Shown here one piece after another: positions 6,862 through 60,000 of a DNA stretch of 64,000 nucleotides. The notes beneath the pieces were generated by a model. That model did not search any database, was not told the DNA's origin, and saw nothing but the letters and a program-made list of their open reading frames with translations. The stretch lies in NCBI RefSeq assembly GCF_039654945.1, contig NW_027361964.1:2294001-2358000 (forward strand), written 5' to 3'. How positions within the stretch are numbered: position 1 is the first letter of the stretch; each line of letters starts with the position of its first letter. A program made the translations under genes and the position numbers. The stretch is from Dendrobates tinctorius (Eukaryota).

Positions 6862-6976
6862 AATGAGCTTGGGATCTGGTGGATGAGCTTGGGATCTGGT
6901 GGTTGAGCTTGGGATGAGTTTGGGATTTGGTGGATGAGCTTGTGATGAGCTTGGTATCCAGTGGATGAGCTTAGGA
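6862..6976. repeat. Short ~20-bp tandem repeat (GGATGAGCTTGGGATCTGGT) directly 3' of the TAS2R stop codon
   Basis: About 5-6 imperfect copies visible. Confidence 0.75.
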
Positions 6977-7927
6977 TCAATGTTCAGCCTCTTGGGTTAA
7001 GTTCAAGGTTCCCAAATTCTTATTGTTCTCCATCAATTTGCTTGGACAGATTGCCCCCTGAAATGCCTTCCTCAGTTTGGGGCTGGCCTGGATCATGATG
7101 ATGGCTTCTATTGTGGGAAAGACAAATATTAGACACCAGCAAACCACGGTCCTCATGTCACTCAATGACTGGGTGTAGAAGAGAATGGTCTCTGCCGTGT
7201 AGAATATTCCTGACAACGTTAATAACAGGACCATTGTTCCTATAGCATTGACATGGGGCTGCAGTTTAGGATGAAGAGATTGCGGATTGTTGAGTTTTAT
7301 GTTGCACATGTGTCTTAGAAGAGATGAAACCGATGTGATGAGAGAGACGAGAATTACCATGAAGGGCGCACAACATCCCAGCATGTTGGACACCACAGTG
7401 TACTCAATGCTTGTGGATGCTATTACCACACTGGTAAAGATGAACGTCTCATTCCCTAAATCTTGTGTATGAATTTTCATTTGAAGAGTCCAAATCCCTG
7501 GAATACTGATGACCAATGAACCAAGTCCTGAAAACATGAGTAGATAAGGCAATACATTTGTAAGCCATCTCTTCATCCAAGGGAAAAATCTGTGGCTGAA
7601 ATTGGAGATGCTGGTGCAGTAGTAGATGCAGAGCCAGGCAGTCAACCAAAAGGTGTAGTGCATCAAGAAGGGCAAAGTGATAACGGTCACACTGAAGGCC
7701 ATTGTGAGATAGGAGGTAGACAGCCACAAGCCGACAAAGTGTCCGAGCAGCAGACCCCGTAGGATGATGTTAACCATTCCCATAGCCACATGGATTAGGT
7801 CAGATGGAGTCCGCTTCCAGCCTCCTTTTAGGCTTTTCACGTTAATAATGATGATGCTAGCATTCAAGGAAATTGCCACTACTCCTTCTACAAGACTAAG
7901 AGCACCAAGATGAATGAGGAACCACAT
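6977..7927 (-). CDS. TAS2R: Taste receptor type 2 (bitter receptor), intronless, 316 aa
   Basis: Seven TM segments; motifs FWLTAWLCIYYC..ISNFSH..F..MK, SSLLRHM, HVNAIGTMVLL, IQASPKLR; ECL2 sequon NET. Confidence 0.92.
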   Translation of the reverse strand: MWFLIHLGALSLVEGVVAISLNASIIIINVKSLKGGWKRTPSDLIHVAMGMVNIILRGLLLGHFVGLWLSTSYLTMAFSVTVITLPFLMHYTFWLTAWLCIYYCTSISNFSHRFFPWMKRWLTNVLPYLLMFSGLGSLVISIPGIWTLQMKIHTQDLGNETFIFTSVVIASTSIEYTVVSNMLGCCAPFMVILVSLITSVSSLLRHMCNIKLNNPQSLHPKLQPHVNAIGTMVLLLTLSGIFYTAETILFYTQSLSDMRTVVCWCLIFVFPTIEAIIMIQASPKLRKAFQGAICPSKLMENNKNLGTLNLTQEAEH

Positions 7928-13404: not shown

Positions 13405-16400
13405 AATTCATCCTCCACACTGGGCCTTTTTCATGTCCGGCTCATCCTCTATACTGAGCCCTCTTCATGTCCAGCTCGTCCTCTATACTGAGCCTTTTTC
13501 ATGTCCGGCTCATCCTCTATACTGAGCCCTCTTCATGTCCAGCTCGTCCTCTATACTGAGCCCTCTTCATGTCCAGCTCGTTCTCTATACTGAGCCCTCT
13601 TCACGTCCAGCTCATCCTCCATACTGAGCCCTCTTCATGTCCAGCTCATCCTCCATACTGAGCCCTCTTCATGTCCAGCTCGTCCTCTATACTGAGCCCT
13701 CTTCACGTCCAGCTCATCCTCTATACTGAGCCCTCTTCATGTCCAGCTCATCCTCTATACTGAGCCCTCTTCATGTCCAGCTCATCCTCTATACTGAGCC
13801 CTCTTCATGTCCAGCTCATCCTCTATACTGAGCCCTCTTCACGTCCAGCTCATCCTCTATACTGAGCCCTCTTCATGTCCAGCTCATCCTCTATACTGAG
13901 CCCTCTTCATGTCCAGCTCATCCTCCATACTGAGCCCTCTTCATGTCCAGCTCATCCTCCATACTGAGCCCTCTTCATGTCCAGCTCGTCCTCTATACTG
14001 AGCCCTCTTCACGTCCAGCTCATCCTCTATACTGAGCCCTCTTCATGTCCAGCTCATCCTCTATACTGAGCCCTCTTCATGTCCAGCTCGTCCTCTATAC
14101 TGAGCCCTCTTCATGTCCAGCTCATCCTCCATACTGAGCCCTCTTCATGTCCAGCTCATCCTCTATACTGAGCCCTCTTCATGTCCAGCTCATCCTCTAT
14201 ACTGAGCCCTCTTCATGTCCAGCTCATCCTCCATACTGAGCCCTCTTCATGTCCAGCTCATCCTCTATACTGAGCCCTCTTCACGTCCAGCTCATCCTCC
14301 ATACTGAGCCCTCTTCATGTCCAGCTCATCCTCTATACTGAGCCCTCTTCACGTCCGGCTCATCATCCATACTGAGCCCTCTTCACGTCCAGCTCATTCT
14401 CTATACTGAGCCCTCTTCATGTCCAGCTCATCCTCTATACTGAGCCCTCTTCACGTCCAGCTCATCCTCTATACTGAGCCCTCTTCACGTCCAGCTCATT
14501 CTCTATACTGAGCCCTCTTCATGTCCAGCTCATCCTCTATACTAAGCCCTCTTCACGTCCAGCTCATTCTCTATACTGAGCCCTCTTCACGTCCAGCTCA
14601 TCCTCCATACTGAGCCCTCTTCATGTCCAGCTCATCCTCTATACTGAGCCTTCTTCATGTCCAGCTCATTCTCTATACTGAGCCCTCTTCACGTCCAGCT
14701 CATTCTCTATACTGAGCCCTCTTCACGTCCAGCTCATCCTCTATACTGAGCCCTCTTCACGTCTAGCTCATCCTCTATACTGAGCCCTCTTCACGTCCAG
14801 CTCATCCTCTATACTGAGCCCTCTTCACGTCCAGCTCATCCTCTATACTGAGCCTTCTTCATGTCCAGCTCATCCTCTATACTGAGCCCTCTTCATGTCC
14901 AGCTCATTCTCTATACTGAGCCCTCTTCACGTCCAGCTCATCCTCTATACTGAGCCCTCTTCACGTCCAGCTCATCCTCTATACTGAGCCTTCTTCATGT
15001 CCAGCTCATCCTCTATACTGAGCCCTCTTCAGGTCCAGCTCATCCTCTATACTGAGCCCTCTTCACGTCCAGCTCATCCTCCATACTGGGCCTTCTTCAT
15101 GTCCAGCTCATCCTCCATACTGGGACTTCTTCATGTCAAGCTCATCCTCCATACTGGGACTTCTTCATGTCAAGCTCATCCTCCATACTGGGACTTCTTC
15201 ATGTCAAGCTCATTCTCCATACTGTGCCTTCTTCATGTCCAGCTCATCCTCTATACTGAGCCCTCTTCATGTCCAGCTCATCCTTCATACTGGGCCTTCG
15301 TCATGTCCAGCTCATCCTCTATACTGAGCCCTCTTCATACCCAGCTCATTCTCTATACTGAGCCCTCTTCATGTCCAGCTCATCCTCTATACTGAGCCCT
15401 CTTCATGTCCAGCTCATCCTCCATAATGAGCCTTCTTCATGTCCAGCTCATCCTCCATACTGGGCCTTCTTCATGTCCAGCTCATCCTCTATACTGAGCC
15501 CTCTTCATGTCCAGCTCATCCTCCATACTGTGCCTTCGTCATGTCCAGCTCATCCTCCATACTGGGCCTTCTTCATGTCCAGCTCATCCTCCACACTAGG
15601 CGTTCTTCATGTCCAGCTCATCCTTCACACTGGGCCTTCTTCATGTCCAGCTCATCCTCCACACTGGGGGTTCTTCATGTCCAGCTCATCCTCCACACTA
15701 GGCCTTCTTCATGTCCAGCTCATCCTCCACACTGGGCCTTCCACATGTCCAGCTCATCCTCCATACTGGGCCTTCTTCATGTCCAGCTCATCCTCCATAC
15801 TGGGCCTTCTTCATGTCCAGCTCATCCTCCACACTAGGCGTTCTTCATGTCCAGCTCATCCTTCACACTGGGCCTTCTTCATGTCCAGCTCATCCTCCAC
15901 ACTGGGGGTTCTTCATGTCCAGCTCATCCTCCACACTAGGCCTTCTTCATGTCAAGCTCATCCTCCACACTGGGCCTTCCACATGTCCAGCTCATCCTCC
16001 ATACTGGACCTTCTTCATGTCCAGCTCATCCTCCATACTGGGCCTTCTTCATGTCCAGCTCATCCTCCATACTGGGCCTTCTTCATGTCCAGCTCATCCT
16101 CCACACTAGGCCTTCTTCATGTCCAGCTCATCCTCCATACTAGGCCTTCTTCATGTCCAGCTCATCCTCCACACTGGGCCTTCTACATGTCCAGCTCATC
16201 CTCCACACTGGGCCTTCTTCATTTCGAGCTCATCCTCCACACTGGGCCTTTCTCATATCCAGTTCATCCTCTACACTGAGCCCTCTTCATGTCCAGCTCA
16301 TCCTCCACACTGGACCTTCTACATGTCCAGCTCATCCTCCATACTGGGCCTTCATGTCCAGCTCATCCTCCATACTGTGCCTTCTTCATGTCCAGCTCAT

Positions 16401-17195
16401 TCTCCACACTGGGCCTTTTTCATGTCCGGCTCATCCTCCACACTGGGCCTTTTTCATGTCCGGTCATCCTTCATACTGGGCCTTCTTCATGCCCGACTCA
16501 TCCTCCACAATGGGCCTTTTTCATGTCCAGCTCATCCTCCACACTGGGCCTTCTTCATGCCCGGCTCATCCTCCACACTGGGCCTTTTTCATGTCCGGCT
16601 CATCTACCATACTAGGCCCTCTTCATGTCCAGCTCATCCTCCATACTGGGCCTTTCTCATATCCAGCTCATTTTCCACACTTTGCCTTTTTTCTTGTCCA
16701 GTTCATCCACCATACTGGGCCTTCTTCACGCCCAGCTCATCCTCCACACTGGGCCTTTCTCATATCCAGCTCATCCTCTACACTGAGCCCTCTTCATGTC
16801 CAGCTCATCCTCCACACTGGGCCTTCTACATGTCGAGCTCATCCTCCATACTGTGCCTTATTCATGTCCAGCTCATCCTCCACACTGGGCCTTTTTCATG
16901 TCCGGCTCATCCTCCACACTGGGCCTTTTTCATGTCCGGTCATCCTCCATACTGGGTCTTCTTCATGCCTGACTCATCCTCCACACTGGGCCTTTTTCAT
17001 GTCCAGCTCATCCTCCACACTGGGCCTTTTTCATGTCTGGCTCATCTACCATACTAGACCCTCTTCATGCTCAGCTCATCCTCCATACCGGGCCTTTCTC
17101 ATATCCAGCTCATTTTCCACACTGAGCCTTTTTTTTGTCCAGCTCATGATCCATACTGGGCCCTCTTCATGTCTGGCTCATCCTCCCCACTGCGC
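13405..17195. repeat. 34-bp minisatellite array (ATACTGAGCCCTCTTCATGTCCAGCTCATCCTCT)n, ~3.8 kb, ~110 units
   Basis: Direct 34-bp periodicity; two subtype blocks. Confidence 0.97.
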
Positions 17196-17441
17196 ACTCA
17201 TAATTGTCACCTGTTTTTCTGGCCGATACTTAATATCAAAGAAAACATTATCTATTTCTCTCACCCACTGATGCCGGTACTAAATCGCAGGGGCAAACAC
17301 AGAAGAGGGCCTCTGTGTGAGACCAGCATATGGGCCCTTTGCATTTCAATAATGGTCAGTGATGGTTTGCTGGCTTGGAGGTGGTAGTGACTCCCGTACC
17401 TCATGGGTCCCTCTGTGACTGCACAAGTTGCACCAATGGCA

Positions 17442-30399: not shown

Positions 30400-31005
30400 G
30401 TATCTCATCCTGTACTGTCACCCTTCCTGGGCCCCTTTTGGAACTGATGTCCACCATCTTGTGACCCTTACTTGTATTGAATTTATTGTCTGTACATGTC
30501 CCCGCTTAATTGTAAAGTGCTGCGGAATATGTTGGCGCTATATAAATAAAAATTATTATTATTATTATTAATGACCCCATTCAGGACCCTTGCAGTAATA
30601 ATGTCCAACACAATGTGCCATTTACATGGAGAATGTTCCCCACCATTGACCCCTTGTAATAAGAATGTTCCCCATCCTGGGCCCCTTCTAATAATAATGT
30701 CCTACATCCATTACCCTTCCTGCTTCAATGTCCACCATCCTGAGGCCCTTTCTGTAATGATGTCCCCATCCAGGCCACTTCCTAGTATAATCTCCCACAT
30801 CCTGAGCACTTTCAAGTAATATATGTCCCCATCTTGGTTCCATCCTGGTATAAGGTCCCTCATTCTGGGCCACTTCCAGTAATAATATTACCCATACTTG
30901 GCACCCTCCAGTAGTAATATCTCCATTCTAGTACCATGTCCCCATTCAGTCCCATTCCAGTAATAATGTCCCCCTCTTGGGCTCATCCTGGGATAAATGT
31001 TCAAC
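30400..31005. repeat. Degenerate ~34-bp tandem repeat (CCCATCCTGGGCCCCTT..GTAATAATGT)
   Basis: Recurrent imperfect units. Confidence 0.6.
30468..30571 (+). mobile_element. Extremely 5'-truncated L2 (3' end only), same subfamily as 32651-35486
   Basis: Near-identical to ~35381-35486, including the (TTA)n tail; candidate TSD TGACCC (30462-30467 / 30572-30577). Confidence 0.85.
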
Positions 31006-32650
31006 CTTCTCCTCTAACACATTTTAAAAAATAAATGCTTCTTCTTATGTTCAGCCATTCCCAAGACGAGCAGCGTACTCCTCTATAGCTAGCACAAAGA
31101 CCGGCAGCTGACAGTCTTGCTTGCTATGAGCGACGCACAATTTATGGCTACACGATGCTGTCAGCTGCCGGCCACTGAATTACCCGTGGTATGTATTGCA
31201 ATGCAGGGACCCGGCGGGTCACTGTGCCACAACACATTTCAGGTGGATGTGATTCCTTGGACTCACATCCAGGTGAAATAGGTGTTGGTGTCGGCCGGCC
31301 CTCCTCCTGCATGGACCTGTTCATGGTCCCACCCTCTGCCACCAGGATCGCTACGCCTCTGAACCTCAAGCATGCATTGACCCAGGGGAGGAATTCTGAC
31401 TATATCACTTCTCCAATATCTATTAATAATTACAAACATTTCTTGCTTCTTTAATGTATTATGGCAACAAATGAACATGAAATTTTATCATAACATCAGA
31501 TTACTTCATAACAAAGCGTGAGTTACAATAAATCAGGAGGAGCCATAATCGTAACTTCTGCTCACTAGGGTGAAAGTGGCACGTGGTGCTTCTGATGCAT
31601 AAAATAATGCACTTTCTTGGAGGAGTGCTATGCATGGATTTCACAGACAGTACTCGTAGCTATGATATTCTATAGGGCTGTGTACATGTCCAATGTTTGT
31701 TTCTGAGACATGTCTGATTTTGATCCCTCAAAATCGGCAATGCAAGTCTATGGGTTCGTGAAACTAATCGGACCTCACTTGGATGACAGAATGAAAAAGG
31801 TGGAGGATCTTTTTTTTCCCAATGTCTGAGAAAAACCGATGCCACTCTGATCGTAGTCTGATCGTAGTCTGATCAGAATAATAGGACCGTGTTTTTTTTT
31901 CGGATGTGGAGACACTTCCCTTACCATAAATTAATCAACTCAGTATCAGACAATTATATTAATGCCAAACATTTTCAAGTCTTGAAGGAGATATTGTAGC
32001 ATCAGGTTTATGTGGACGACAGGTCTCCAGCTACTGGCTACCCAGCATGATATGACAGCCACACAGGTGGAAATCCATCGCTTGTGGTCATCTACTTCAT
32101 TTTACTGTCTATTCCCAATTCTGAGTCTTCTGTTAGATCTTTAGACCCATCCTCCACATCCTGGATTGATCTTCATTTGCTTATTTGCTTATTTCGCATC
32201 TTCCTACATGTAGATGAGCACCAGCTCTGAAGCATCTTTCTAAGCTTTGAGTTGGACTGGATGATGATGGCGACTTCGATTGTTGGGTAGGACACCCCAA
32301 AGAGCCAGTTAAGCAAATGCAGATCATCCAATTTAAAAGGGATTACTAAACCAAAGATTGCTACCAAATAATAAGATACAGAAAGCAGAATGAGCAGAGT
32401 CATTGTCCTGACAGCATTGAGGTAAATCTTCATCTGAGGGCAGGTAAAGCCCAACACTCCTTGTTTCATGTTCCGAATGTGTGCTAGCAGAAATGAAGCA
32501 GTGAATCCAGCTGAGAGGAAACTAATGATGAAGGGTGGCCAGCAACAAAGGAAGGTGAACAGCATCATGTACAGAGTATTGAAGGTGTAATCAGGGAGAA
32601 CGAAGTCCAGGGTACCATTCCCAGAAGGTTGTGGTTGGCTAATTCCACTT

Positions 32651-35486
32651 CACCACCTGGCTTACTCACTTTCTGTCCTGTGACATCCCCACCCTCATCA
32701 TGGGAGACTTTAACATCCCCATCAATGATCCGCTCTCCCAGTCTGCCTCTCATCTTCTTTCTCTAACTTCTTCATTCGGCCTCTCACAGTTTACTAATTC
32801 TCCTACACATGAGGACGGGAATACTCTGGACCTGGTTTTCTCCCGTCCCGGCTCGCTGCACAACTTTACTAATTCACCTCTCCCGCTCTCGGACCACAAC
32901 CTTCTTTCCTTCTCTGTCAAGAATTGTCTCCTCACCCGGGACACCCCCACTTACCACACTTATCGGAATACACGTACCATTAATACCCAACAGCTTAGGG
33001 ACAATCTCCACACATCTTTAGCCCCCATCTCCACCCTCTCCTGTCCAGACATAGCATTGTCACACTTCAATAATACACTGAAGAATGCCCTAGATGAAGC
33101 AGCACCTTCTATACGCAGAAAGACCCGACACAGACAAAAGCAGCCCTGGCACACAACGCAAACACGCTCTCTTCAGCGCTGCTCGAGGTGTGCAGAGCGG
33201 CAGTGGAGAAAATCTCTCTTAGCAGAAGACTTCATCCACTATAAGTTCATGCTCAAAACCTATAACTCTGCCCTTCATCTGGCCAAACAATCCTACTTCA
33301 CCACCCTCATCACCTCACTATCCAACAACCCAAGACGACTTTTTGAAACCTTAAACTCCCTCCTGAAACCTAAAGTACAGGCCCCCATCACCAACCTCAG
33401 CGGTGAGGATCTGGCCACTTATTTCCTAGAAAAAATCAACCACATACATCAGGATATCTCAGCCCTATCTCCTCAGTGCCTGGATCCCCTTCCCTGCCGC
33501 ACCTCAAGCTCACTAGACATCTTTGAGCCTGTTTCAGAAGAAGAAGTTTCCAAGCTCCTCGCTTCTGCTCGGCCTACAACCTGCAACAGTGACCCTATTC
33601 CTTCACAGCTCCTGCAGTCTCTCTCACCAGTGGTCACCACTCACCTGACTAAAATATTTAACCTCTCTCTTTCTTCAGGTATATTTCCCTCCTCATTTAA
33701 ACATGCCATCATAACCCCTTTACTTAAAAAGCCATCCCTGGACCAGAACTGCACTGCTAACTACAGACCTGTCTCTAACCTTCCCTTCATCTCTAAACTC
33801 CTGGAACGCCTGGTCCACTCCCGTCTAATCCGCTATCTCTCGGATAACTCTCTTCTCGACCCCTTACAATCTGGTTTCCGCTCTTTACACTCTACTGAAA
33901 CTGCCCTCACTAAAGTCTCTAATGATTTAATAACAGCTAAATCGAAAGGTCATTGCTCCCTGCTGATTCTCCTGGATCTCTCTGCCGCATTTGACACTGT
34001 GGATCACCAGCTCCTCCTCACTATGCTCCGCTCTATAGGCCTCAAGGACACAGCCCTCTCCTGGTTCTCCTCCTACCTCTCTGACCGCTCCTTCACTGTA
34101 TCTTTTTCCGGCTCCTCTTCCTCTTCTCGTCCCCTTACTATCGGGGTCCCGCAGGGCTCAGTCCTAGGCCCCCTCCTCTTCTCTTTATACACTGCCCCTA
34201 TTGGACAAACAATCAGCAGATTTGGGTTCCAGTATCATCTCTATGCTGATGACACCCAATTATACACTTCTTCCCCTGACATCACCCCTACCCTAATTCA
34301 AAATACCAAGGATTGTCTGTCTGCTGTCTCTAGCATCATGTCCTCCCTCTATCTGAAACTAAATCTCTCTAAAACTGAACTTCTTGTGTTTCTCCCCTCT
34401 ACTAACCTCACTCTACCTAACATCGAAATAACCCTGGAGGGTTCAACCATAACTCCCAAGCAGCATGCCCGCTGTCTTGGGGTCATATTCGACACTGAAC
34501 TTTCCTTTACTCCGTACATCCGATCACTCAGTCGCTCTTGTCACCTGCATCTTAAAAACATCTCCAGAATCCGACCTTTTCTCACCTTTGAAACTGCTAA
34601 GACTCTTACTGTCGCTCTTATTCATTCTCGTCTGGACTACTGCAACTCTCTTCTGATCGGTCTCCCTCTTACCAAACTTTCTCCTCTCCAATCCATCTTG
34701 AATGCGGCAGCCAGGGTCATATTTCTGTCCAGCCGCTTCACCAATGCCTCCATCTTGTGCCAGTCATTACACTGGCTACCTATTCGCTACAGGGTCCAGT
34801 ATAAACTCATCTCTCTCACCCACAAAGCTCTCCACTGTTCTGCACCGCCTTATATCTCCTCTCTCATCTCTGTCTATCGCCCTACACGTGCCCTCCGTTC
34901 TACAAATGACCTAAGACTAACATCCCCCGTAATCCGAACCTCGCACCTCCGTCTCCAAGACTTCTCTCGTGCTGCTCCAGCTCTCTGGAATGCACTTCCC
35001 CAGACGATCAGACTGATACCTAGCCCTGACCTATTCAAGCGCGCTTTGAAAACCCATCTCTTCAAAGAAGCCTATCACATCAACTACTCAGCAAGCTAAC
35101 TTTGCCCTGTTCCCTCCTTCCAAATATTATTCTGAATCTGCACCCTACTATTCATCTGTCTCCACACCCTTCATGCACATGATAACTGCACTTGATACTT
35201 GTCTATTGCACTTAAACACACGGGCTGATGACCGGATCATGCAGCTTTATATGAAAATCCCTATTATAATTGCCAGACCTGAATTAACAAGCATTTCTCA
35301 CCTACTGTGTCCCCCCATTTCCTTGTAGATTGTAAGCTTGCGAGCAGGGACCTCACTCCTAATGTCATTGTTTGAATTGTCTTAACTTGTATTGAATTTA
35401 TTGTCTGTACATGTCCCCGCTTAATTGTAAAGTGCTGCGGAATATGTTGGCGCTATATAAATAAAAATTATTATTATTATTATTAT
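32651..35486 (+). mobile_element. L2-clade LINE, 5'-truncated, young
   Basis: 11-bp TSD TAATTCCACTT (32640-32650 / 35487-35497); uninterrupted ORF2; 3' UTR ending in AATAAA plus (TTA)n. Confidence 0.95.
32700..35099 (+). CDS. L2 ORF2: C-terminal half of the AP endonuclease plus complete reverse transcriptase (799 aa)
   Basis: [20 protein letters not shown]; [58 protein letters not shown]. Confidence 0.95.
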
Positions 35487-36589
35487 TAATTCCACTTGGT
35501 ATAAATAGGATGCTTACAGCAAACGACAACAGTGCCGATATTAGGAGAAGATATGGCAGGAGCTGAAAAAAATTCCTCTTTAACCAAGTGAAGAATTTAT
35601 GACTGAAGGTTGTTGTGCTGGTGAAGTAGAAGAGACAGAGCCAGGTGATGAGCCAGTACTGGAAGTACATGAGGAGCGTTAGGATGGTCAAGTAAAACTC
35701 TATCACTTCCTTGATGAGAAAGGCATCTCTGAAGACCACAAAGAGCAGAGCCTCAGAGATCAATGCACTTAGCTGAAATAGGTTTACCACAGCAATGAAG
35801 AAGTGGAGCAAAGTGGACGGGTTCACTTCATTTCCAAGTCTGAAGATGTTTCTATTCACAACCATAAGGAAAGTGTTTAAAGTTATCCCAACCAGACTCT
35901 CCAGAAGACTGAAGATCATGAAGAAGAACCACAAAGAAAAATTCATGGTCAGCCTCAAGTAGGTTTCTTGTGATATTCCTGAATGTTGGATGCTTGGTGC
36001 GATGTGTCTGATGTCAGGTCCCTTGTGTTGGATTCTAGATGCTACGCACTGGATGATGGCTGCTGGATACCAAGTTTTGGTTGCTATGTACTACATGACC
36101 AATGCTGGGCATAGGAAGCTGAACATTGTGGGTCAGCAGGTGGAAGGTAGGGGATGTTAGACTTCTGCAAACCATCATTTACATGAAACTTTACATGCTA
36201 TTTGCTTATGGTGTAAGTTACAGACAACCAAAACTATAAACATAGAGGTGAAAACAAAATTAATTAGTTCAAGTATTTGTAATACGCAGATTATTAATTG
36301 GCAGTGATGGAGATATGTCGGGAAGAAAGTTTCAGTAAAACCAGGTCCTGGTGCCAGATGAGACTTCTTCACTACCTACCAAGTCATCAACAGCATGGGG
36401 CACATGTACGGTATGTGGATATATTGTAGGGGAAAATCTCAAAATGATACTGGTTGGATAGGTTCAGATTAGGTTGATGAGTTACCATCCTGTTAATGAT
36501 CTTAGTAAAGAAGTTACGGAACCAAGTAATGAAGAGCAATGTCATTGCCTCCAACAAAATTGCTGTAGTAGAAAACAAGGCGGCTCTAT

Positions 36590-37625
36590 GGGTCAACAGG
36601 GGCACATTCCTCTCCAGCGTAAACCTCTAACACCAAAGCAACAAATTTAGACTCATCCAAACAAAACTTGGCTGTGTAGCTCCAGGAATCAGCTCGTTAC
36701 TTGGCCCAATAAATAAAAGTGTGTCCACTATCCAGATGGGTAACTTCTTTGAACATAAACATGAAAAAGGTAAAAATTAACCTCCCATTAATCTTAAACC
36801 TACTAGAGTCCCATTGGCCAACTTCGTTGATCAAATCCTCACTCAATGCCATCTGTGGAGCTTCTGGAGCTGCTCCCATCCACATTGAATGTCAACTTCA
36901 ATTTATCCAAACACAGTGAAATAAGAATTTCCTTAAATTGCTACAAACCTGAAATGTAGTAAAAAAGATCGTGTGGGATCAACAAGACATCGTTAAGCTT
37001 AGATCTGACCAAAAAACACAATCTCATTAATAAACTCAGTAATCCTCAACCAAGATCCTCTACCAAATCGATCTGATTTGGATTTTCTAATTAACGCTGA
37101 GATACGATCCTGAAACAGGCGATAATCATCCACCAGGGGACCTGAAGAGGATGTTTTATTCCTAGTCACTAATTCACCAATTCTGAGGGCAACAATAAAT
37201 TAAAGTGAAAAGGCATAAAAGAAGAAAGGCAAAAACCAGACAAGACGGTCCATAACTTACCCAATATATTCCGTGATGGCTCCACAGCCATCCACACTAA
37301 AACACGTCCTACATCGTTTAAAAAGTCTTAGAGGTCTTAGAAAAGTCAAGAAATATCCTGTAAACCATTTAACCTGAGAAAAAAACATATAATTGGAAAA
37401 AGTTTTGAAATTGTAGAAGCAGAAAGATTATTCTGTAATATCATGCTGACGTAAGAAAGAGTCACACCCAACTCAGACGGCAAGTGGTCAGCGTCCATAC
37501 TACTGTAATACATTAACCAACTTCTCCATGCAACTAAACATTCCGTAGAGACAATGAATCTGGTCCAGGCGTACAATCTCATGTATCGGGACGCACAGTC
37601 GCACATAAGATGGTTAGCGCTGACA
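36590..37625 (-). mobile_element. Ngaro-like (DIRS order) fragment: tyrosine recombinase followed by the start of an SGNH-hydrolase-like ORF, degenerate
   Basis: Minus-strand remnants ALRIGELV, IRKSKSDRFGRG and MGAAPEA...VGQWDSSRFK (recombinase boxes), then GHTFIYWA. Confidence 0.7.
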
Positions 37626-38535: not shown

Positions 38536-38854
38536 ATTCTATAAAGATACTATAGCAGCCCGGCTCCCATTGTAATGCCCACCTGAGCCTCTCGGTGCAG
38601 GACATATCATGATCCGCTCACATGGCCGGCATCCCCGATTCCAAGGCGATCCTGCTGTCTGCGCTGTCGGAGGAGGACACGGTGATGGAACTGAAGCATT
38701 CCTAGTTCCGTCACAATCTCCTCATAAATTACCTCATTTCCGGTCAGCTTCCAGCACATCACTTCCGGTGGAACGTCATGTGTGTGTTTTAAAATGCTCC
38801 TCGGGGCTCCGCCGTGTACTCCTGTGTCCGTGGGAAAAGCCCGCTTTGTATGCT

Positions 38855-41800
38855 TTGTACACACTTGGCTCCGCTCCGTACATCCCGTACACATATGGCT
38901 CCACTCCGTACACACACGGCTCCGCTCCGTATACCCCATACACGCGCAGCTCCGCTCAGTACACCAAATACACACACGGCTCCGGTCCGTACACTTCGTA
39001 CACGCGCGGCTCCTCTCCGTACAAGCGCGGCTCCGATCCATACACCTCATACACGCACGGCTCCTCTACATACACCACATACACGCACAGCTCCACTCCG
39101 TACACCTCATACACGCACGGCTCCTCTCCATACACCTCGTACACGCGGCTCCGTTCTGTACACCTCGTACACACACGGCTCCTCTCCGTACACCTCGTAC
39201 ACACGCGGCTCCTCTCCGTACACCTCGTACACACACGGCTCCTCTCCGTACACCTCGTACACGCGGCTCTGTTCTGTACACCTTGTACACACACGGCTCC
39301 TCTCCATACACCTCGTACACACGCGGCTCCACTCCGTACACCTCGTACACGCGGCTCTGTTCTGTACACCTCGTACACACACGGCTCCTCTCTGTACACC
39401 TGGCTCCGTTCTGTACACCTCGTACACACACGGCTCCTCTCCGTACACTTCGTACACACACGGCTCCTCTCCGTACACCTCGTACACGCGGCTCAGTTCT
39501 GTACACCTCGTACACACACGGCTCCTCTCCGTACACTTCGTACACACACGGCTCCTCTCCGTACACCTCGTACACGCGGCTCTGTTCTGTACACCTCGTA
39601 CACACACGGCTCCTCTCCGTACACCTCGTACACGCGGCTCCGTTCTGTACACCTCGTACACACACGGCTCCTCTCCATACACCTCGTACACACGCGGCTC
39701 CTCTCCATACACCTCGTACACGCGGCTCTGTTCTGTACACCTCGTACACACGCGGCTCCTCTCCGTACACCTCGTACACGCGGCTCTGTTCTGTACACCT
39801 CGTACACACACGGCTCCTCTCCGTACACCTCGTACACACACGGCTCCTCTCCGTACACCTCGTACACACACGTCTCCTCTCCGTACACCTCGTACACGCA
39901 GCTCCGTTCTGTACACCTCATACACACACGGCTCCTCTCCGCACACCTTGTACACGCGCGGCTCCTCTCCATACACCTCGTACACGCGGCTCCGTTCTGT
40001 ACATCTCATACACACACGGCTCCTCTCCGTACACATCCAGCTCTGCTCCGTACACACGCGGCTCCTCTCTGTACATCCCGTACACACGCGGCTCCGCTCT
40101 GTACACACACGGCTCCTCTCCGTACACCTCGTACACGCGCAGCTCCTCTCCGTACACACGGCTCCGTTCCGTACACCTCGTACACATCCAGCTCCGCTCC
40201 TTACACCTCGTACACACGTGGCTCCTCTCCGTACACCTCGTACACGCGCGGCTCCTCTCCGTACACCTCGTACACACGGCTCCGTTCCTTACACCTCGTA
40301 CACATCCCGCTCCGTACACCTCGAACACACACGGCTCCGCTCCGTACACACACGGCTCCGTCCTGTACACCTCGTACACACACGGCTCCTCTCCGTACAC
40401 CTTGTACACACGCGGCTCCTCTCCGTACACCTCGTACACACACGGTTCCGCTCCGTACACCTCGTACACACGCGGCTCTGTTCTGTACACCTCGTACACA
40501 CACGGCTCCTCTTCGTACACCTCATACACACACAGCTCCGCTCCGTACACCTCGTACATACACGGCTCCTCTCTGTACACCTCATACACATCCAGCTCCG
40601 CTCCGTACACCTCGCACACACGTGGCTCCACTCCGTACACCTCATACACACGGCTCCGCTCCGTACACCTCGTACACATGCGGCTCCGCTCCATATAACT
40701 CGTACACACGCGGCTCCTCTCCGTACACCTCGTACACACACACGACTCCTCTCTGTACACCTCATACACATCCAGCTGCGCTCCATACACCTCGTACACG
40801 CGGCTCCGCTCTGTAACCTTATACACATGGCTCCGCTCCGTACACCTCGTACACACACGGCTCCGCTCCGTACACCTCGTACACACACGGCTCCGTTCCG
40901 TACACCTCGTACACACGCGGCTCCGTTCCCTACACCTCGCACACACGCGGCTCCGCTCCGTACACCTCGCACACACGCGGCTCCGCTCCGTACACCTCGT
41001 ACACACGCGGCTCCGCTCCGTACACCTCGTACACACGCGGCTCCGCTCCGTACACCTCGTACACACGCGGCTCCGCTCCGTACACCTCGTACACACGCGG
41101 CTCCGCTCCGTAACCTTATACACATGGCTCCGCTCCGTACACCTCGTACACACACGGCTCCGCTCCGTACACCTCGTACACACACGGCTCCGTTCCGTAC
41201 ACCTCGTACACACACGGCTCCGTTTCGTACACCTCGCACACACACGGCTCCGCTCCGTACACCTCGTACACACGCGGCTCCGCTCCGTACACCTCGTACA
41301 CACGCGGCTCCGCTCCGTACACCTCGTACACACGCGGCTCCGCTCCGTACACCTCGTACACACGCGGCTCCGCTCCGTACACCTCGTACACACACGGCTC
41401 CGCACACCTTGTACACACGCGGCTCCGCTCCGTACACCTCGTACACACACGGCTCCGTTTCGTACACCTCGCACACACACGGCTCCGCTCCGTACACCTC
41501 GTACATACACGGCTCCGCTCCGTACACCTCGTACACACAGGGCTCCTCTCCGTACGCCTCGTACACACACGGCTCCGCTCCGTACACCTCGTACACACGC
41601 GGCTCCGCTCCGTACACCTCGTACACACACGGCTCCGCACACCTTGTACACACGCGGCTCCGCTCCGTACACCTCGTACACACGCGGCTCCGCTCCGTAC
41701 ACCTCGTACACACGCGGCTCCGCTCCGTACACCTCGTACACACGCGGCTCCGCTCCGTAACCTTATACACATGGCTCCGCTCCGTACACCTTGTACACAC

Positions 41801-42240
41801 ACGGCTCCGCTCCGTACACCTCGTACACACACGGCTCCGTTCCGTACACCTCGTACACACACGGCTCCGTTTCGTACACCTCGCACACACGCGGCTCCGC
41901 TCCGTACACCTCGTACACACGCGGCTCCGCTCCGTACACCTCGTACACACGCGGCTCCGCTCCGTACACCTCGTACACACACACGGCTCCGCACACCTTG
42001 TACACACGCGGCACCTCTCCGTACACCTCGTACACACACGGCTCTTCTACGTACACCTCGTACACACGCGGCTCCGCTCCGTACACCTCGTACACACGCG
42101 GCTCCGCTCCGTACACCTTATACACACGGCTCCGCTCCGTACACACGCGGCTCCGCTCCATACACCTGATACACACGGCTCCGCTCCGTACACCTCGTAC
42201 ACACACGGCTCCGCTCCGCACACCTCGTACACACATAGCT
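38855..42240. repeat. CpG-rich 30-bp minisatellite (CTCCGCTCCGTACACCTCGTACACACGCGG)n with 28-bp and shorter variants, ~3.4 kb
   Basis: Direct periodicity; source of the 600-1100-aa repetitive ORFs. Confidence 0.97.
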
Positions 42241-42352
42241 CTGCTACATCCACCCTGTAAACCTCTCCTGACCCCACACATACTTACCTCATCCAGCACC
42301 ATGAAAACCAGCACAGCAGAGTCCGGCAGACACCAAGAGGCAGGGCTGTGCG

Positions 42353-42479
42353 CACAGGACCTGTGATGAGGTCGAGAAGGGGCGGAGTCAGGGCTCACAT
42401 GATCAGGGGTCTGGACAAAGGCTCCTGATCATGTGACCCCTGACTCCTCCCCTCCTGTGACCTCATCACAGGTCCTGTG
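42353..42479. repeat. Imperfect inverted repeat (~60-bp arms, ~6-nt loop)
   Basis: CACAGGACCTGTGATGAGGTC...TCACATGATCAGG / CCTGATCATGTGA...GACCTCATCACAGGTCCTGTG. Confidence 0.85.
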
Positions 42480-48526: not shown

Positions 48527-51500
48527 TTACATTACGTAATCTCTGCAACGGGCAGGAATCTGACCTCTAGTACTACGAGTGGATCTACGCAGTATAGGTA
48601 TTTCTGATGACCTGACCTGTTCTCTGATGTCTACTGTTGGTGCATTAGTCACTATGCTATAAGTAGACTTGTGTAAGATAGGTATTCTAGACTGCCTTCT
48701 CTCTACTCCGAGACTCACCATGAGATTCTCAGATTCGCTGTTAGCAGGGGACAGATTTCCGCATTCCTCTGCAGATGTGGTATCTGTTACTGGAGCCATT
48801 TCATTTAGAGTCTCTTCTTCATCTGATGCAGTAGGCCGATGAAAGGTTAGGACTGGTACTACTATTGCCTGATTTACTTGTGTCCACGTCCGAGGAAATT
48901 CTCCAAGTATAGTTTGAATCTTTTCTTCCACCTGTACTATGGGCCGTGGAGTGTCTTGGATTTCTTTCTTGTCCTTCAATTGATCAGGGCACATCTTTAT
49001 ATGATCTCTTGAGACTGCTTCGAAGGTTTCTCCTCCATCTTTGCTGATGATACATACTTTGGTGTTATTAAAGTCTGAAGGTATCACGGTGTATGGCTCT
49101 GCCTCCCATTGGTCATCTAGTTTGTGAGCTCTTCTTTTTCTTTTAAATACTTGTTCTCCTGGTGTCAAGGGAACTGCAGGGGCATGTTGGTTGTAATTTC
49201 TTTCCTGTCTCTGTCTTGCTTGGGACAAACTTTTCTCCACACATTCTTTTACTTTGCGGTATTGTTGTTGCCGCTCTGTATTCCAGTCTGCATCTGGTGA
49301 TGTTGTCTCAGGTGTTAAGACTCCCATGTCTAAATCAATAGGTAACTTGCCAGGTCTTGCTCTCATCAGATAGACCAGAGTGCAATTTGTAGAGTTTACC
49401 GGTATATGATTATATAGATCTACCAAATCTGGCAACTTCTCTGGCCACTGGTTTCTTTCTTCCAGAGGTAAGGTCTTCAATAAGTCAATGACCACTTGGT
49501 TCATCTTCTCACACATGCCATTTGTATGTGGATGGTATGGCGTCGTTCTGATTTTCTTGCAACCGTACATGTTACAGAACTCCTGAAACACTTCTGCCTC
49601 AAAGGCTGGACCTTGATCGGTGAGCACTTGTTCAGGGTATCCGTGCGGTCGACAAAAGTGTTGCTGAAATGCCTTGGCTGCTGTCTTCGCTGTTTGGTCT
49701 TTATCAGGTACGACTACCAAGAACCTTGAGTGATGGTCCACGATGGTCAAAGCATATGTGTAGCCATTCCTACTCGGAGTTAACTTCACGTAATCCAAGG
49801 CTACCAGTTCAAGCGGCTGTTTTGTGATGATCGGCTGTAACGGGGCTCTCTAGCTGCTTTGGTCTTTTCTGGGCAGGTTGCATGGGCCACATTCTCGGCA
49901 CCACTTCTCAGTGGAACTCCTCATGCCAACCCAGTAGAATCTTTCACAAAGTAGGATCTCCAACTTCTTCCAACCGAAGTGTCCTGCTCCATTGTGGTAC
50001 GCCTTTAAGACCATTGGCGCATCCCTCTTCAGGACTACCACCTGCCAGACCAGTTTGTGTGTCCTGTGCCTGCGAGTTGATGTTCCTCCAACACAGTTTA
50101 CCCTCGTAGATGAACAGCTTGCCTCTCTCCTTCCATAGCTGCTGTGCTTCCTGTGGGTCATCTGGACCAGGGTGTGCATCAGCTTCTGCCAGCCACTCCT
50201 TTACGAGTTGAACAGCTGGGTCACTGTCTTGTGTCTCTGCCCATTCATGATGGGTAATGGGTTCAACGTTACCTCTCGTACGACAAAGCGCTTATTCCTC
50301 ACTCCTTGAGAGCGCTGGTCTGCAATTGGAAGGTGGAAGGCTGGTAACTCGATTTCTTCGAGTTCTTTTGGATCTTCTCCCCCGTCTGGTGAATTGGGCA
50401 TCCTGGACAGCGCATCTGCATTAGCGTTCTTATGTCCTGCTCGGTACTTGATGGTGAACTCGTAGTTGGACAGCCGGGCCATCCATCGCTGCTCAAGTGC
50501 CCCAAGCTTTGCCGTTTCAAGGTAGGTTAGCGGATTATTGCCGGTGTAGATGGTGAACTTTGCGGAAGCCAAGTAGTGCTTGAAGCGCTCTGTTACTGCC
50601 CAGACTATGGCGAGGAACTCCAGCTTAAAGGAACTGTAGTTGTCGGGGTTCCTCTCAGTGGGATGTAGCTTCCTGCTGGCGTAAGCAATCACTCTCTCTC
50701 TCTCTCTGCCTTTCTGCACTTGTGAAAGCACTGCTCCCAATCCCATGTTGCTGGCATCAGTGTAAAGTGCAAATGGTTGGTCATAGTCAGGGTAGGCCAG
50801 GACCTCATCTCCTGTGAGGGCCAATTTCAACTTGGTAAAGGACTCTTCTATCCTTTTGTTCCACTCGAACGGAAGATTTTTGTTCTTGGCCTTCTTAGAT
50901 TGGCCCACTAGAAGATCTTGCAGCGGTGCTTCTATCTTGGTGAAGTCCTTGATAAATCTTCGGTAGTAGCCAACTAACCCAAGAAATTACCTCACTTCAT
51001 GGATAGTGCTGGGTCTTTTCCAGGCCTGGATAAAGGCGACTTTGTCAGGATAGGGTGCCACACCTTCCGCGCTCACCACATGGCCTAGGTACTGCACCTT
51101 GGGTTTCAAAAGGTGACATTTGAACAGTTTTATTTTCAGGCCAAAGTTTGACAGGGCTTCGAATACCTCGGCTAGGTGCTTCAGATGGTCTTCGTAGGTT
51201 TTGGAGAAGACGATGATGTCATCCAGGTACAGCAGAACGGTTTCAAAGTTTTTATGTCCAAGGCAGCATTCCATTAACCGCTGAAATGTTCCTGGTGCAT
51301 TGCTGAGCCCGAACGGCATGTAGTTAAACTCGCAGAGGCCCATTGGTGTTGTAAACGCTGTCTTCTCTTTGTCTGCGTCTGCCACAGGAACCTGCCAATA
51401 CCCACTGTTGAGATCTAAGGTAGAGAAATAGCAGTTCTCAGTGCAGATAGTGATTCCTCAATTCTAGGTTATGGGTAAGCGTCTTTATGTGTAATGCTGT

Positions 51501-52316
51501 TAATCCGCCTGTAGTCTACACATTCTCATAGTACCATCTTTCTTTTTAACGAGGACTAATGGAGCTGCCCAGGGGCTACAACTATCTCTGATTACCCCAG
51601 CCTCCTTCATCTCCCGTAACATACTCTTGGCACATTGATAGTGTGCTGGGGGTACAGGCCGGTGTCTCTCTTTAATGGGTGGATGATCACCGGTGGGGAT
51701 ATGATGTTGAACCCCTTTTGCCTGCCCAAAATCTAGAGGATGCTTGCTGAAGACCCGTTCAAATTCTCGAGCCACCCGGTAAGCCCCATGCTTTTGGTGC
51801 AAAGGGGTGGAGTCAGTGCCTACGTGTAGCTGCTGACACCAATCCTCCTGTTGCCCTTCAGAGCCATTCTCTTCCACCTTATCAGATGGAAGCAAGGGTT
51901 CTAGTGTCTCGATTGCATTGTTACTGACGGTGAACAATTTAGCAAGGGTGGCATACCGGGGTAACTGGACCTCTCTCTCCCCACAATTTACGATGCGTAT
52001 TGGTACTCTCCCCTTGCGGACATCAACTACCCCTCTGGCTGTCAGGATAGTGGGCCTGCTATCAGAATACATGGGTTCTACCAGGGCTTGGTAATCTTGA
52101 CCCCTTAAGCCTATAGCTGCCCGACACCAAATTAACATTTCACTTCTGGGAGGTACTGCAATGGGGAAAGGATCACTTACTCTGACTCTGCCGACTTCTC
52201 CACCAGACAGCTCTACCTGTTGTCTCTGCATCAGGGCTCTGATCTCCTTTTGCAGGACTCGCTGCTGACTGGAGCTGGCGGTCTCGGCTACCTGTTGTAA
52301 TAAAGCAATAATTTCG
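48527..52316 (-). pseudogene. Gypsy pol pseudogene (RT, RNase H, integrase; several frameshifts and stops)
   Basis: SPWAAPLVLVKKKDG; KTAFTTP.GLCEF..MPFGLSNAPGTFQRLM; YLDDIIVFS; YTDAS..GLGAVLSQ; LTDQGPAFE; TTPYHP.TNG.CE. Confidence 0.92.
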
Positions 52317-52319
52317 AAT

Positions 52320-54066
52320 TCCATAAAGAAGAAAAGGGTCGCACTCATCGGAATAAGTTTTTGCTGCTTTATTGACACATGAAATACATGTCAAGTTGGG
52401 ACCGTGACAAAAAAGAGTGCGGATAGGTTGACAACGGTCGTTTCGTGCTGTTAGAGCGCTTCTACGGGTCGACTAGTAGGAGGAAATGACGGATACATAT
52501 ACTAATCACATCTTGCCGTCTCTCCTCCTACCCCAGCTGTTGTCTAAGTGACAAGTGAAATTAAAACCATGTGAAGATGCATAAAACAAATTACAAATAC
52601 AAGAACTATATAAGTTCCACTTCATCTGGAGAGATTGATAACCGTGTGCTACTCCCTGTATGTCTGTTTTTATATATATATGCTTTTTTTTGACACAAGA
52701 CAAATTTTGTTATGTGAAAAAAGGAAATATTATTCCAACTTCGATATTTTTTCAGAAAATATTTTCATCGAAAATTATTGTATGTATGATTGTTTCTGCT
52801 GGAATATTTGTCTATCCATACTACCACTTCATTAATATTGCACGCATGAGATCTAAACTAATAAATGCGAGGAAGCATAATCTTAGACTCTCATTAAAGC
52901 TTGTTCAGTAACAAATTTGCTATTCTAATTCTGGACTAAAAGTTGTTTATTCAGCATCTATCAGACTATTATTCAGGAACGCTGCCAAAACGTGTTGATT
53001 TTGTGTGTGAAGCCATGAGGTTCATGTTAACCGTCAAAATGTGGGTACAGCGATGGGTACTCCAGTATCAGGTACATTTGCGAATCTGTTTTTGGGAGCC
53101 TTGGAAGAAAAATATGTTTACAAAGCAAATGATTATTTTAAACATATCAGATTATATCTCGGATATGTGGACGATGTGTTCAGAATTTGGGATGGTACAA
53201 AAGAAACTTTTGAGGAGTTTGTCACCTATCTTAATGAAGTGAACCCAATGAATAAGGCTTTTACATACAAGTATGAAGGTATAAGTTTAGAATTTCTGGA
53301 TGTACTATTGGAAATTAAAGATGACAGCATTTGTACATCAGTCTACAGGAAACCGTTAGCAACTAATTCCATATTACGATATGATAGCCTTCACCCTCCA
53401 CACACAGTTAATTCATTACCATATAGTCAATTTTTGAGAGTACGATGTTTGAATAATACCAAAGAGGGTTTCGAAAAACAATCTAGTGAATTATATGATT
53501 AAAACAACGGGGATACCCAAAAAGGTTGTTGGATACTACGCTCAAAAAAGTTGAATCTCAAATTGAGGAGAAAAGCGTTAGTATAATGTCACAACAACAT
53601 AGACAGAATAAGAAAGAAAAAAGATTAACTTTCTGTTTGCGTTATGGATCGGCAAATAAAATCAGCAATTAGAAAAAACTGGCGTGTTTTAGAACAGGAT
53701 AGGGACCTGGGTGACATAGTATCGAGAGGACCACTAGGCTAAGGGATATCTTGGTCCAGAACAGACTCATGACGAGACACGGGGCTTAGTAGAGGAACCC
53801 GGAAGGGAAATTATAGGTGTGGACGTTGTCAATACTGTCAATACCATTGTACTGACCGGACACTACAAATAGGGGCGGTTACACACACAGTGATGGAATT
53901 GATCACATGTAAAACGGATAATGTCGTCTATGTGATCTTTTGTACATGCCGTTTTTTCTATATAGGTAAAACAATACGCCCTCTATGTGTTAGATTTCGG
54001 GAACATTTGAAATCAATACAAACAGGAAAAGGAGTTCCACGTCTGATTAGCCACGTTAGGAATGTT
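52320..54066 (+). mobile_element. Penelope-like retroelement fragment (inverted terminal-repeat piece, RT, GIY-YIG endonuclease), defective
   Basis: 53041-53502: GTAMGTPV..TFANLFLG, YVDDVFRIW, LEFLDV, VYRKP..TNSIL.Y.S.HP...SLPYSQFLR. 53890-54060: ITC.T.NVVY.I.C.C..FYIGKT.R.L..RF.EH. Confidence 0.9.
52427..52473 (-). ncRNA. Degenerate minimal type-I hammerhead-like motif in the Penelope terminal repeat
   Basis: GTCGAC-CCGTAGA-A-GCGCT..AGCAC-GAAA-CGACCGT-T-GTCAAC: hammerhead topology with a variant core. Confidence 0.45.
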
Positions 54067-57081: not shown

Positions 57082-57969
57082 ATGGGTCTGGAGATATTTC
57101 ACATGCTTGTTACCATCATTATGTTTGTTCCAGGAACTGCTCTGAATTCCTTCATTGTCTCCATCTACATCACCCACTCAAAAAAGAAACAACGCCTGAC
57201 TACCTGGGAGCAGATCGTCCTGTCTACAGCTGTCACTGACCTGCTTCTCCAGTGGTTCTCTGCTTTCATTGATCTAACGTACTATGTTTTTTCTAGACTT
57301 TCTCACATCGGGATGATCTACTTGTACTTATCTGTCTTCTACTTCTGTACCAGCTACTTCTTCTTCTGGAACACAGCTTGGCTCTCCATCCAATACTGCC
57401 TGAAACTCTTCAACTTCTCCAATCATTGGTTGACTTGGGTGAAGGTCCAGCTTGACACTTCCTTGAAGGTAATCCTCACCGGCTCATTAATTTGGGTATT
57501 TATTGTCAGTATTCCAGTTTATGGTACGGTCACCTTGGTTATTGACAGCGCGACTAATTACTCAATTCCAGTGGTAAACTACCATTGTCTGATAGTGAAC
57601 ATCCTTCTCGGTTGTGTTCTCCCCTTCATTAGTACCCTTGTCTGTATCAGCCTCAGTGTGATGTATCTCATAAGACACATGTGGAGGATCAAAGAGTCCA
57701 ACTTTAGTTCTTCTCCACGCGTCAGTGGCCATGTCCGAGCGATCAGGTCCATGGTCCTACAAGTCGTCCTGAACACAATTCTGCAGATGGCCATTACTGG
57801 TAACATTGCATCCGCCTTCAACCTGACCTCATTCAGTCATAAGGAAGCGTTTGTAGTGTTCTACACACTGACCATTGGAACATATCCGTCTGTGGAAGCG
57901 CTAACCTTAATCATAGGGAATCCCACATTAAAGAAGAGGTTACTGAGAAAGCTACAGGTCCTCTGCTAA
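57082..57969 (+). CDS. TAS2R: Taste receptor type 2 (bitter receptor), intronless, 295 aa
   Basis: Seven TM segments; FWNTAWLSIQYCLKLFNFSNH, YLIRHMWRIK, GHVRAIRSMVL, LIIGNPTLKK; ECL2 sequon NYS. Confidence 0.92.
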   Translation: MGLEIFHMLVTIIMFVPGTALNSFIVSIYITHSKKKQRLTTWEQIVLSTAVTDLLLQWFSAFIDLTYYVFSRLSHIGMIYLYLSVFYFCTSYFFFWNTAWLSIQYCLKLFNFSNHWLTWVKVQLDTSLKVILTGSLIWVFIVSIPVYGTVTLVIDSATNYSIPVVNYHCLIVNILLGCVLPFISTLVCISLSVMYLIRHMWRIKESNFSSSPRVSGHVRAIRSMVLQVVLNTILQMAITGNIASAFNLTSFSHKEAFVVFYTLTIGTYPSVEALTLIIGNPTLKKRLLRKLQVLC

Positions 57970-59004: not shown

Positions 59005-60000
59005 ATGAGAACGCCCCAGCTTGACTCCTCTCAATGTCAATTCCATCAGGAGCTTGAGGAGAGCAGAGAAAAGTTCAGCGACAAGATGATGACCTTCTCT
59101 TGGAAATTCGGATTCATCTTTGCGGTGATTGAATGCATCATTGGAGTTCTCTTCAGCATCTTCATCATCATACAGAACATCCTGGACTGGAAACGAGGAA
59201 GGGGACTGAGTCTGTGTGATAAGATCCTGGTCCTCATGGCGGTGAACAATATCTGCCTCCAGTGTGATATGAATGTGGCAACCTTCCTCTACATCGTCTT
59301 CCCTTCAATGGTTCAGTATAAGAATGCCTATTCCACCTTGTCGGTTTTCCAGATATTTCAGTTTTACTTCAGTTTCTGGATCACCGCCGGACTCTGCATC
59401 TTCTATTGCCTGAGGATTGCCAGCTTCAAACATCGCCTCTTCATCCAGTTGAAGTTGAACATCTCGGATGTGGTTTCCAGGTTTCTTATGTTGGCAGCTG
59501 TGGGATCATTTGGCATTAGTGTTCTCTCCATTTGGCACATAGAAGTGGCCCCTTCCAATGAGGTTATGAATGTCTCAGGTGTCATCTCCCTGAACGATGT
59601 CTCCATCCTCCTAAGTCCATCCTATAAAGTTCTGACCATTGTGGTGGGCTGCTGCGTGCCCTTTCTACTCACCATCCTGTCCATTATTCTCACATTATTC
59701 TCCCTGTTGAGACACATTCGGACTATGAAGTACAGCCAGGCTGGATTCAGTATTCCCGGAATGGCTGCTCACATCCAAGCTGCTCGGATTATGGTTCACC
59801 CCACTGTCCTATATGCAGCATTTTACATCTCAGAGGTTTGCCTTCTGGTATCTTCACTCAATATTGACAACTTTGGGGAATTGTTGTCTTTGATTTTTGT
59901 GTTAATCTATCCTACAGCCCAATCATTAATCATCATCTTAGGGAACTCTAAGCTTCGATCTTCATGTCTACGGATGAGCCAATGTAGAAGGCATCTATAA
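59005..60000 (+). CDS. TAS2R: Taste receptor type 2 (bitter receptor), intronless; 331 aa from the first ATG, with the true start possibly the MM at 59086/59089
   Basis: Seven TM segments; LSLCDKIL, FWITAGLCIFYCLRIASFKH.LFI.LK, FSLLRHI..M, AHIQAARIMV, IIILGNSKLR; ECL2 sequon NVS. Confidence 0.92.
   Translation: MRTPQLDSSQCQFHQELEESREKFSDKMMTFSWKFGFIFAVIECIIGVLFSIFIIIQNILDWKRGRGLSLCDKILVLMAVNNICLQCDMNVATFLYIVFPSMVQYKNAYSTLSVFQIFQFYFSFWITAGLCIFYCLRIASFKHRLFIQLKLNISDVVSRFLMLAAVGSFGISVLSIWHIEVAPSNEVMNVSGVISLNDVSILLSPSYKVLTIVVGCCVPFLLTILSIILTLFSLLRHIRTMKYSQAGFSIPGMAAHIQAARIMVHPTVLYAAFYISEVCLLVSSLNIDNFGELLSLIFVLIYPTAQSLIIILGNSKLRSSCLRMSQCRRHL

Follow-up and report, generated by a model that had tools for sequence, protein, structure and literature searches.

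The window analysed here, a stretch of 64,000 nucleotides from the poison frog Dendrobates tinctorius (RefSeq assembly GCF_039654945.1, contig NW_027361964.1, positions 2,294,001 to 2,358,000 of the forward strand), covers a cluster of bitter taste receptor (TAS2R) genes in a frog genome rich in transposable elements (TEs). Besides four intact TAS2R open reading frames (ORFs), located at 4571-5611 and 6977-7927 on the minus strand and at 57082-57969 and 59005-60000 on the plus strand, it contains a broken locus, namely a minus-strand TAS2R gene (35946..32173) which is interrupted by a plus-strand long interspersed nuclear element (LINE) of 2836 bp at 32651-35486. This broken gene and the LINE inside it are the subject of the following analysis.

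The 5′ part of the gene (35498..35946, minus strand) comprises the start codon, the transmembrane segments TM1-TM4 and codons 1-149 together with two nucleotides of codon 150. The 3′ part (32173..32639, minus strand) contributes the second extracellular loop (ECL2) with an NGT glycosylation site, TM5-TM7, the C-terminal tail and the stop codon (32173-32175). Both halves were recognized by the Pfam profile of the TAS2R family (PF05296, cut-off 22.2 bits), the N-terminal half at profile positions 5-145 of 303 (56.5 bits, E = 3e-15) and the C-terminal half at positions 172-296 of 303 (50.2 bits, E = 3e-13), meaning that the two halves occupy complementary stretches of the profile. Removal of 32651-35497 (2847 bp, i.e., the LINE plus one copy of the duplicated target) yields a 927-nt frame of 308 codons and a stop, with 0 internal stops and 0 frameshifts and with the insert as its sole lesion. 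The excised ORF of 308 aa is intronless, and its hydropathy windows are compatible with seven transmembrane segments. Exactly this restoration had been claimed in a preceding sequence-only reading of the stretch, whose placement of a 2836-bp antisense insert in ECL2 holds as well, with the LINE on the plus strand, the gene on the minus strand and the break at the beginning of ECL2. The break site lies 3-4 residues past the hydrophobic stretch of TM4 (...ILFIPSGI|SQPQPSGNGT...) and ahead of the NGT glycosylation motif.

At present, a read-through product of the gene would consist of 153 receptor residues followed by 29 residues from the antisense LINE tail and a stop. The product of the interrupted gene would thus be a four-helix stump, from which we infer a loss of function. 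All database and structure comparisons described below were performed with the two gene halves and with the orthologue rather than with the excised protein. An exact look-up of both broken ORFs in public assemblies returned no record, and the protein database yielded no product of the broken gene that came from the genome of the window itself.

An empty site in Phyllobates terribilis

A word search with the N-terminal ORF retrieved only four proteins, all of them from dendrobatoid frogs, the best being P0001, a 316-aa TAS2R of Phyllobates terribilis labeled as "taste receptor type 2 member 4-like". The N-terminal half of the window gene is 81% identical to residues 3-151 of this protein and the C-terminal half 89% identical to residues 156-306. 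The P. terribilis orthologue itself can be aligned to the solved structures of TAS2R4, TAS2R14 and TAS2R46 over residues 5-293. At the nucleotide level, blastn aligned window 36222-35487, which extends from the upstream region through the 5′ coding half, to positions 5718-6466 of the P. terribilis locus L001 (88.8% identity), and window 32650-31711 to positions 6456-7355 of the same locus. Since the non-coding flanks align to L001 on both sides, L001 represents the orthologous locus. With both halves matching contiguous residues of P0001 and the flanks aligning too, the claim that one intact gene was split is borne out. Two other origins of the halves were also considered. That they belong to different TAS2R clades is ruled out at this locus, both being aligned to contiguous residues of P0001, and confusion with a paralogue is ruled out as well, the other four TAS2R genes of the window being only 25-36% identical to the broken gene.

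The two blocks in L001 overlap by exactly 11 nt, which is the target of the insertion, and the orthologue holds one uninterrupted copy of it (in gene orientation AAATGGAATTA, vs. AAGTGGAATTA in the window). As both target copies of the window map to this single uninterrupted copy, the orthologue constitutes an empty site. The comparison with a related species, which the sequence-only reading had put forward as a check, hence finds the insertion absent from P. terribilis. It proves the insertion and its exact boundaries, and it dates the event to the time after the Phyllobates lineage had separated (dS = 0.17).

In the window, the 11-nt sequence TAATTCCACTT is found at 32640-32650 and again at 35487-35497, forming an exact (11/11) target-site duplication that brackets the LINE, as had been proposed. 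Identity between the two copies ends at 11 bp in both directions. A third occurrence within the window, at 20172, is unrelated. In the orthologue, a single 11-nt stretch is the counterpart both of the copy adjoining the 3′ tail of the LINE (35487..35497) and of the copy at the 5′ truncation (32640..32650). In the latter, the nucleotides CCACTT (32645-32650) double as LINE sequence: a D. tinctorius protein and other copies of the LINE family read ...CAG TTT CTA GAC CAC TTC ACC..., in agreement with the window from 32645 on. Since the read data contain further family copies that continue beyond 32645 in the 5′ direction, CCACTT is common to target and element and represents a 6-nt microhomology at the 5′ junction. 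On the tail side, only TA of the duplicated target keeps the (ATT)n register. Of the two junction microhomologies described earlier, CCACTT at the 5′ truncation is therefore real, whereas the TAAT shared with the tail was overstated.

The sequence upstream of the gene (35947..36222, minus strand) lies within the blastn block 36222-35487 and is thus kept in P. terribilis. It includes a block at 36170-36215 (minus strand), ~230-270 nt before the ATG, in which octamer-like motifs, AAGCAAAT plus CATGTAAA twice, are conserved with L001 ~5720-5770. Exact copies of ATTTGCAT are located at -49 and -35 of two other TAS2R genes of the window. A further observation concerns the unequal divergence of the two halves of the receptor. 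P0004 from Ranitomeya variabilis is 87% identical to the C-terminal half (32188-32649) and only 59% identical to the N-terminal half (35488-35946), and all relatives diverge more in the N-terminal than in the C-terminal half. This pattern suggests that TM1-TM4 may evolve faster in this TAS2R subfamily, or that sequence may have been exchanged between paralogues.

A young, truncated LINE with a microsatellite tail

The LINE itself (32651..35486, plus strand) is antisense to the gene and was identified from a match to Pfam RVT_1, from similarity to proteins of P. terribilis, D. tinctorius and platypus, and from word depth. Its frame (32646..35099, plus strand) stays open over 817 codons if counted from the truncation point (32646), the first 5 nt falling inside the duplicated target as part of the microhomology, and over 799 codons if counted from the first ATG (32700..35099), the latter being the stop-free length that had been reported before. 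It encodes a C-terminal remnant of the endonuclease, with the GDFN...SDH end retained, a reverse transcriptase with the motif YADD and a C-terminal domain. Following the stop codon (35097-35099), a 3′ untranslated region of 367 nt (35100..35466, plus strand) and a directly readable (ATT)7 microsatellite tail (35467..35487, plus strand) complete the element, the final T of the tail being common to the duplicated target. The encoded protein aligns to residues 207-1020 of a 1044-aa ORF2 of P. terribilis with 79% identity, and is 98% identical to a D. tinctorius fragment whose upstream continuation reads ...QFLDHFTTW.... Relatives of the element carry PF03372/PF14529 and PF00078, i.e., an APE-type endonuclease and a reverse transcriptase in one ORF. 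As ~206 endonuclease residues and everything upstream of them are gone from the window LINE, this copy cannot move by itself.

The family to which it belongs is extremely abundant. Logan contigs from the source sample and from organism F, a related species, give a word depth of 1e4-5e5 for the LINE, compared to 5-9 for the flanks. Within the window, a tail-only copy of the same family is found at 30470-30570, 2 kb from the broken gene. It consists of the last ~100 nt plus (ATT)6, is 100% identical to 35385-35485 over 101 nt, possibly has a short duplication (TGACCC) on both sides and is, judged from this identity, a second very young insertion. Since such a copy exists, the 3′ end of the LINE alone suffices for insertion. 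An older L2-like copy at 61589-63938 is 74% identical to the young LINE over 2.3 kb and belongs to a different, older subfamily. The start of the full-length family ORF, which is missing from the truncated window LINE, can be seen in P0058, an L2 fragment of D. tinctorius, where a hydrophobic stretch and, behind it, GDISPNPGP, a 2A/StopGo-like motif, are located at residues ~35-55.

The insert combines a complete 3′ end, a 5′ truncation, microhomology at the 5′ junction and a target-site duplication with a single-copy empty site. Target-primed reverse transcription, which had been proposed from the sequence, is supported by the 5′-truncated LINE and the exact empty site in the orthologue. According to this mechanism, the LINE endonuclease would have nicked the sense strand of the gene at GGAATTA|GCC, and the (AUU)n end of the LINE RNA would have been reverse-transcribed from this nick. 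Synthesis would have stopped or switched template ~620 nt into ORF2, at the 6-nt CCACTT match to the target, and a staggered second nick 11 nt away would have given rise to the target-site duplication; the order of the two nicks is one that we infer. The outcome is an antisense, 5′-truncated and non-autonomous insert at the boundary between TM4 and ECL2.

Weighing a recent knockout of a constrained receptor

These observations are best explained by a recent event in which a previously constrained single-exon TAS2R of a dendrobatid cluster was knocked out by retrotransposition of a LINE of the L2 clade, a reading to which we assign a probability of about 0.88. Several points weigh against it, namely in the clade assignment of the element, in the selective history of the receptor, in the assumptions behind the dating and in the coverage of the junctions, and they are given here beside the evidence on the other side.

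Concerning the clade, the window LINE is most likely an L2 element. A near-intact reverse transcriptase from platypus is 54% identical to it over 561 aa, and no autonomous LINE other than L2 is known to have been active in monotremes in the recent past. The reverse-transcriptase motifs including YADD and the microsatellite tail in place of poly(A) are features which we take to be typical of L2 elements. On the other hand, the assignment, also as made in the sequence-only reading, is one of similarity and not of a reverse-transcriptase phylogeny with reference elements, and the database names of the LINE relatives are uninformative. An Rfam scan of 31000-37000 at E <= 1 detected no UnaL2 3′ element and only two chance-level matches, and the 102 nt at the 3′ end of the LINE were predicted to fold no better than shuffled sequences (z = 0.27). 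An origin from another clade such as CR1, Rex1 or similar, for which these latter points would speak, appears quite improbable in view of the platypus match, the YADD motif and the tail.

With regard to the receptor, dN/dS (the ratio of nonsynonymous to synonymous substitution rates, Nei-Gojobori) relative to P. terribilis is 0.43 for the whole gene (p = 0.0009 against 1) and 0.30 for the C-terminal half (p = 0.001 against 1). Values near 1 in both halves, named beforehand as an outcome that would speak against a recent knockout, were thus not obtained. The overall value of 0.43 means that constraint acted on the gene during most of its past. When three further relatives were used as outgroups, 19 amino-acid changes were assigned to the window lineage and 13 to the P. 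terribilis lineage (p = 0.38), and as this is no significant excess, there is no sign of a long period of relaxed constraint. The N-terminal half, however, has a dN/dS of 0.63, which is not significantly below 1, and R220C and P127F are window-specific changes at positions conserved in all four relatives. These two replacements leave a small doubt, as some function may have been lost prior to the insertion. Together with a start codon shifted relative to P. terribilis, the same points would fit a receptor that had already been rendered non-functional by a regulatory or missense change, with the LINE as a mere passenger in neutral sequence. Such a course of events is considered unlikely, because the overall constraint, the lack of a significant replacement excess, the intact 927-nt frame and the conserved upstream region all stand against it.

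The knockout of a constrained gene can be dated by means of the LINE. In two further conspecific individuals, the high-depth LINE contigs differ from the window copy at 8/2016 and 9/2417 positions (0.37-0.40%). With a rate of 2.5e-9 per site per year, which has been used for D. tinctorius (PMC11152451), we arrive at an upper bound of ~1.5 million years (0.7-3) for the age of the insertion, an estimate that depends on this rate and on the assumption that the source sequence is represented by the contigs which dominate in other individuals. Several of the differences from the dominant family sequence recur in minority copies of the same genome, and since these are subfamily variants, the true age is probably below the bound. 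So far, neither the frame of the receptor nor that of the LINE nor the duplicated target has acquired a second lesion. About 0.6 disabling changes would be expected in the 927-nt frame at this divergence; its intactness agrees with the age bound but adds little to it. The insertion had been described as very recent. The element is indeed young, differing by no more than 0.4% from the dominant family sequence, but a bound of up to ~1.5 million years does not allow one to speak of the moment of gene death.

Read contigs were aligned to 31800-36300 for the source run, for two other individuals and for organism F, with 35453-35498 masked. No contig was listed across either junction in an independent individual, the masked interval and the breaking of contigs at the repeat being limits of this search. 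Within these limits, an empty allele was neither observed nor excluded in the source individual, the two other individuals or organism F. Evidence for the insertion in the population comes solely from the assembly. The lack of a contig across either junction is also what might be expected if a LINE copy had been wrongly spliced into an intact gene during assembly. Such an artefact is nevertheless hardly credible, as a mis-join would yield neither a perfect 11-bp duplication of a sequence that is single-copy in the orthologue nor a microsatellite tail or a microhomology junction, and as a contig of the source run extends from 32553 to at least 32647, adjoining the junction.

Two features of the source run, a contig that breaks off at 32582 and a G at 32600 in place of the A of the assembly, are hints of a second haplotype close to the insertion site. 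Another individual carries a C-terminal-half haplotype with 4 differences in 215 nt; had this haplotype split off before the LINE arrived, empty alleles would be expected, but the counts are too low to tell. In organism F, the upstream flank differs at 31/802 positions (3.9%), and one contig ends at 35499 with 37 unplaced letters that are compatible with a filled as well as an empty site; two joints were dropped there. For X24 and X28, two small runs of other individuals (~75 Mb of contigs), LINE contigs reached depths of 45-200, next to a few apparently single-copy contigs with a depth of 3.6 over the gene. These may be TE-anchored or otherwise enriched libraries, the signal being far above that of a plain genome skim.

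That the insertion segregates as a presence/absence allele within the species, as the sequence-only reading had suggested, is something we regard as possible rather than probable. It is somewhat easier to envisage an ordinary young pseudogene, with the insertion fixed in the species and perhaps common to its closest relatives. The upper bound of 0.7-3 million years is longer than neutral coalescence would plausibly take, neither the source run nor organism F yielded a reported empty-site joint, and the protein database contains no intact D. tinctorius counterpart, though L2 proteins of this species are present. Yet the masking of 35453-35498 and the two dropped joints of organism F make the lack of a reported joint uninformative, truly private changes look rarer (~0.1-0.2%), which points to a younger age, and the C-terminal-half haplotype with 4 differences in 215 nt appears older than the insert.

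Known systems, meaning and surroundings

Apart from the insertion, the broken gene resembles vertebrate TAS2Rs in general and P0001 in particular: it is a single exon of ~308 aa with seven hydrophobic segments, an N-glycosylation motif in ECL2 and a PF05296 match, and it is clustered and has syntenic flanks. From P0001 it differs in being interrupted by the LINE, in a start codon shifted by two codons and in a C-terminal tail that is 8 residues shorter. The element, in turn, shares with the L2 non-LTR (long terminal repeat) retrotransposons of monotremes, fish and amphibians a single long ORF in which an APE-type endonuclease precedes the reverse transcriptase, an end made of a short tandem repeat instead of poly(A), variable 5′ truncation, a high copy number and near-identical copies. 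Unlike those elements, the window copy is short of ~206 endonuclease residues, and neither UnaL2 nor a significant 3′ hairpin was found in it. Similar to LINE insertions into exons that arose de novo or are polymorphic, such as disease-causing L1 insertions in humans, and to chemoreceptor pseudogenes disrupted by TEs, the locus shows an insert that is truncated at its 5′ end, complete at its 3′ end and bracketed by a target-site duplication, along with 5′ microhomology and a host frame that is otherwise intact; the agent, however, is L2-like and ends in (ATT)n, unlike L1 with its poly(A).

The locus is a textbook case of a LINE knocking out one member of a large, redundant gene family, and as such a clean example of expected biology and not a phenomenon of a new kind. 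Surveys of TAS2R genes count intact ORFs and rarely show the death of an individual gene. Here it can be followed base by base: the agent was an active L2-like LINE, a related genus retains the exact empty site, and secondary decay is absent. A pipeline that considers only ORFs would silently drop such a gene. Amphibian TAS2R repertoires are very large, clustered and subject to fast turnover (PMC11798467). The locus described here shows that insertions of TEs contribute to the loss of TAS2R genes in frog genomes rich in such elements. If the insertion turned out to be polymorphic, it would provide a convenient natural and recent null allele of one bitter/xenobiotic receptor, in a frog that deals with alkaloids from its diet, and receptor function, expression and selection could then be contrasted directly between filled and empty haplotypes.

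Additionally to the receptor genes and the L2-like copies, the window contains other repetitive sequence. Integrase, RNase H and protease-like ORFs of LTR or DIRS-type retroelements at 83-1540 and 48527-52378 flank TAS2R genes, and long tandem-repeat arrays at 15371-17271 and 38609-42400 give rise to spurious ORFs with lengths of 300-1100 aa, which occupy several frames and are present on both strands.

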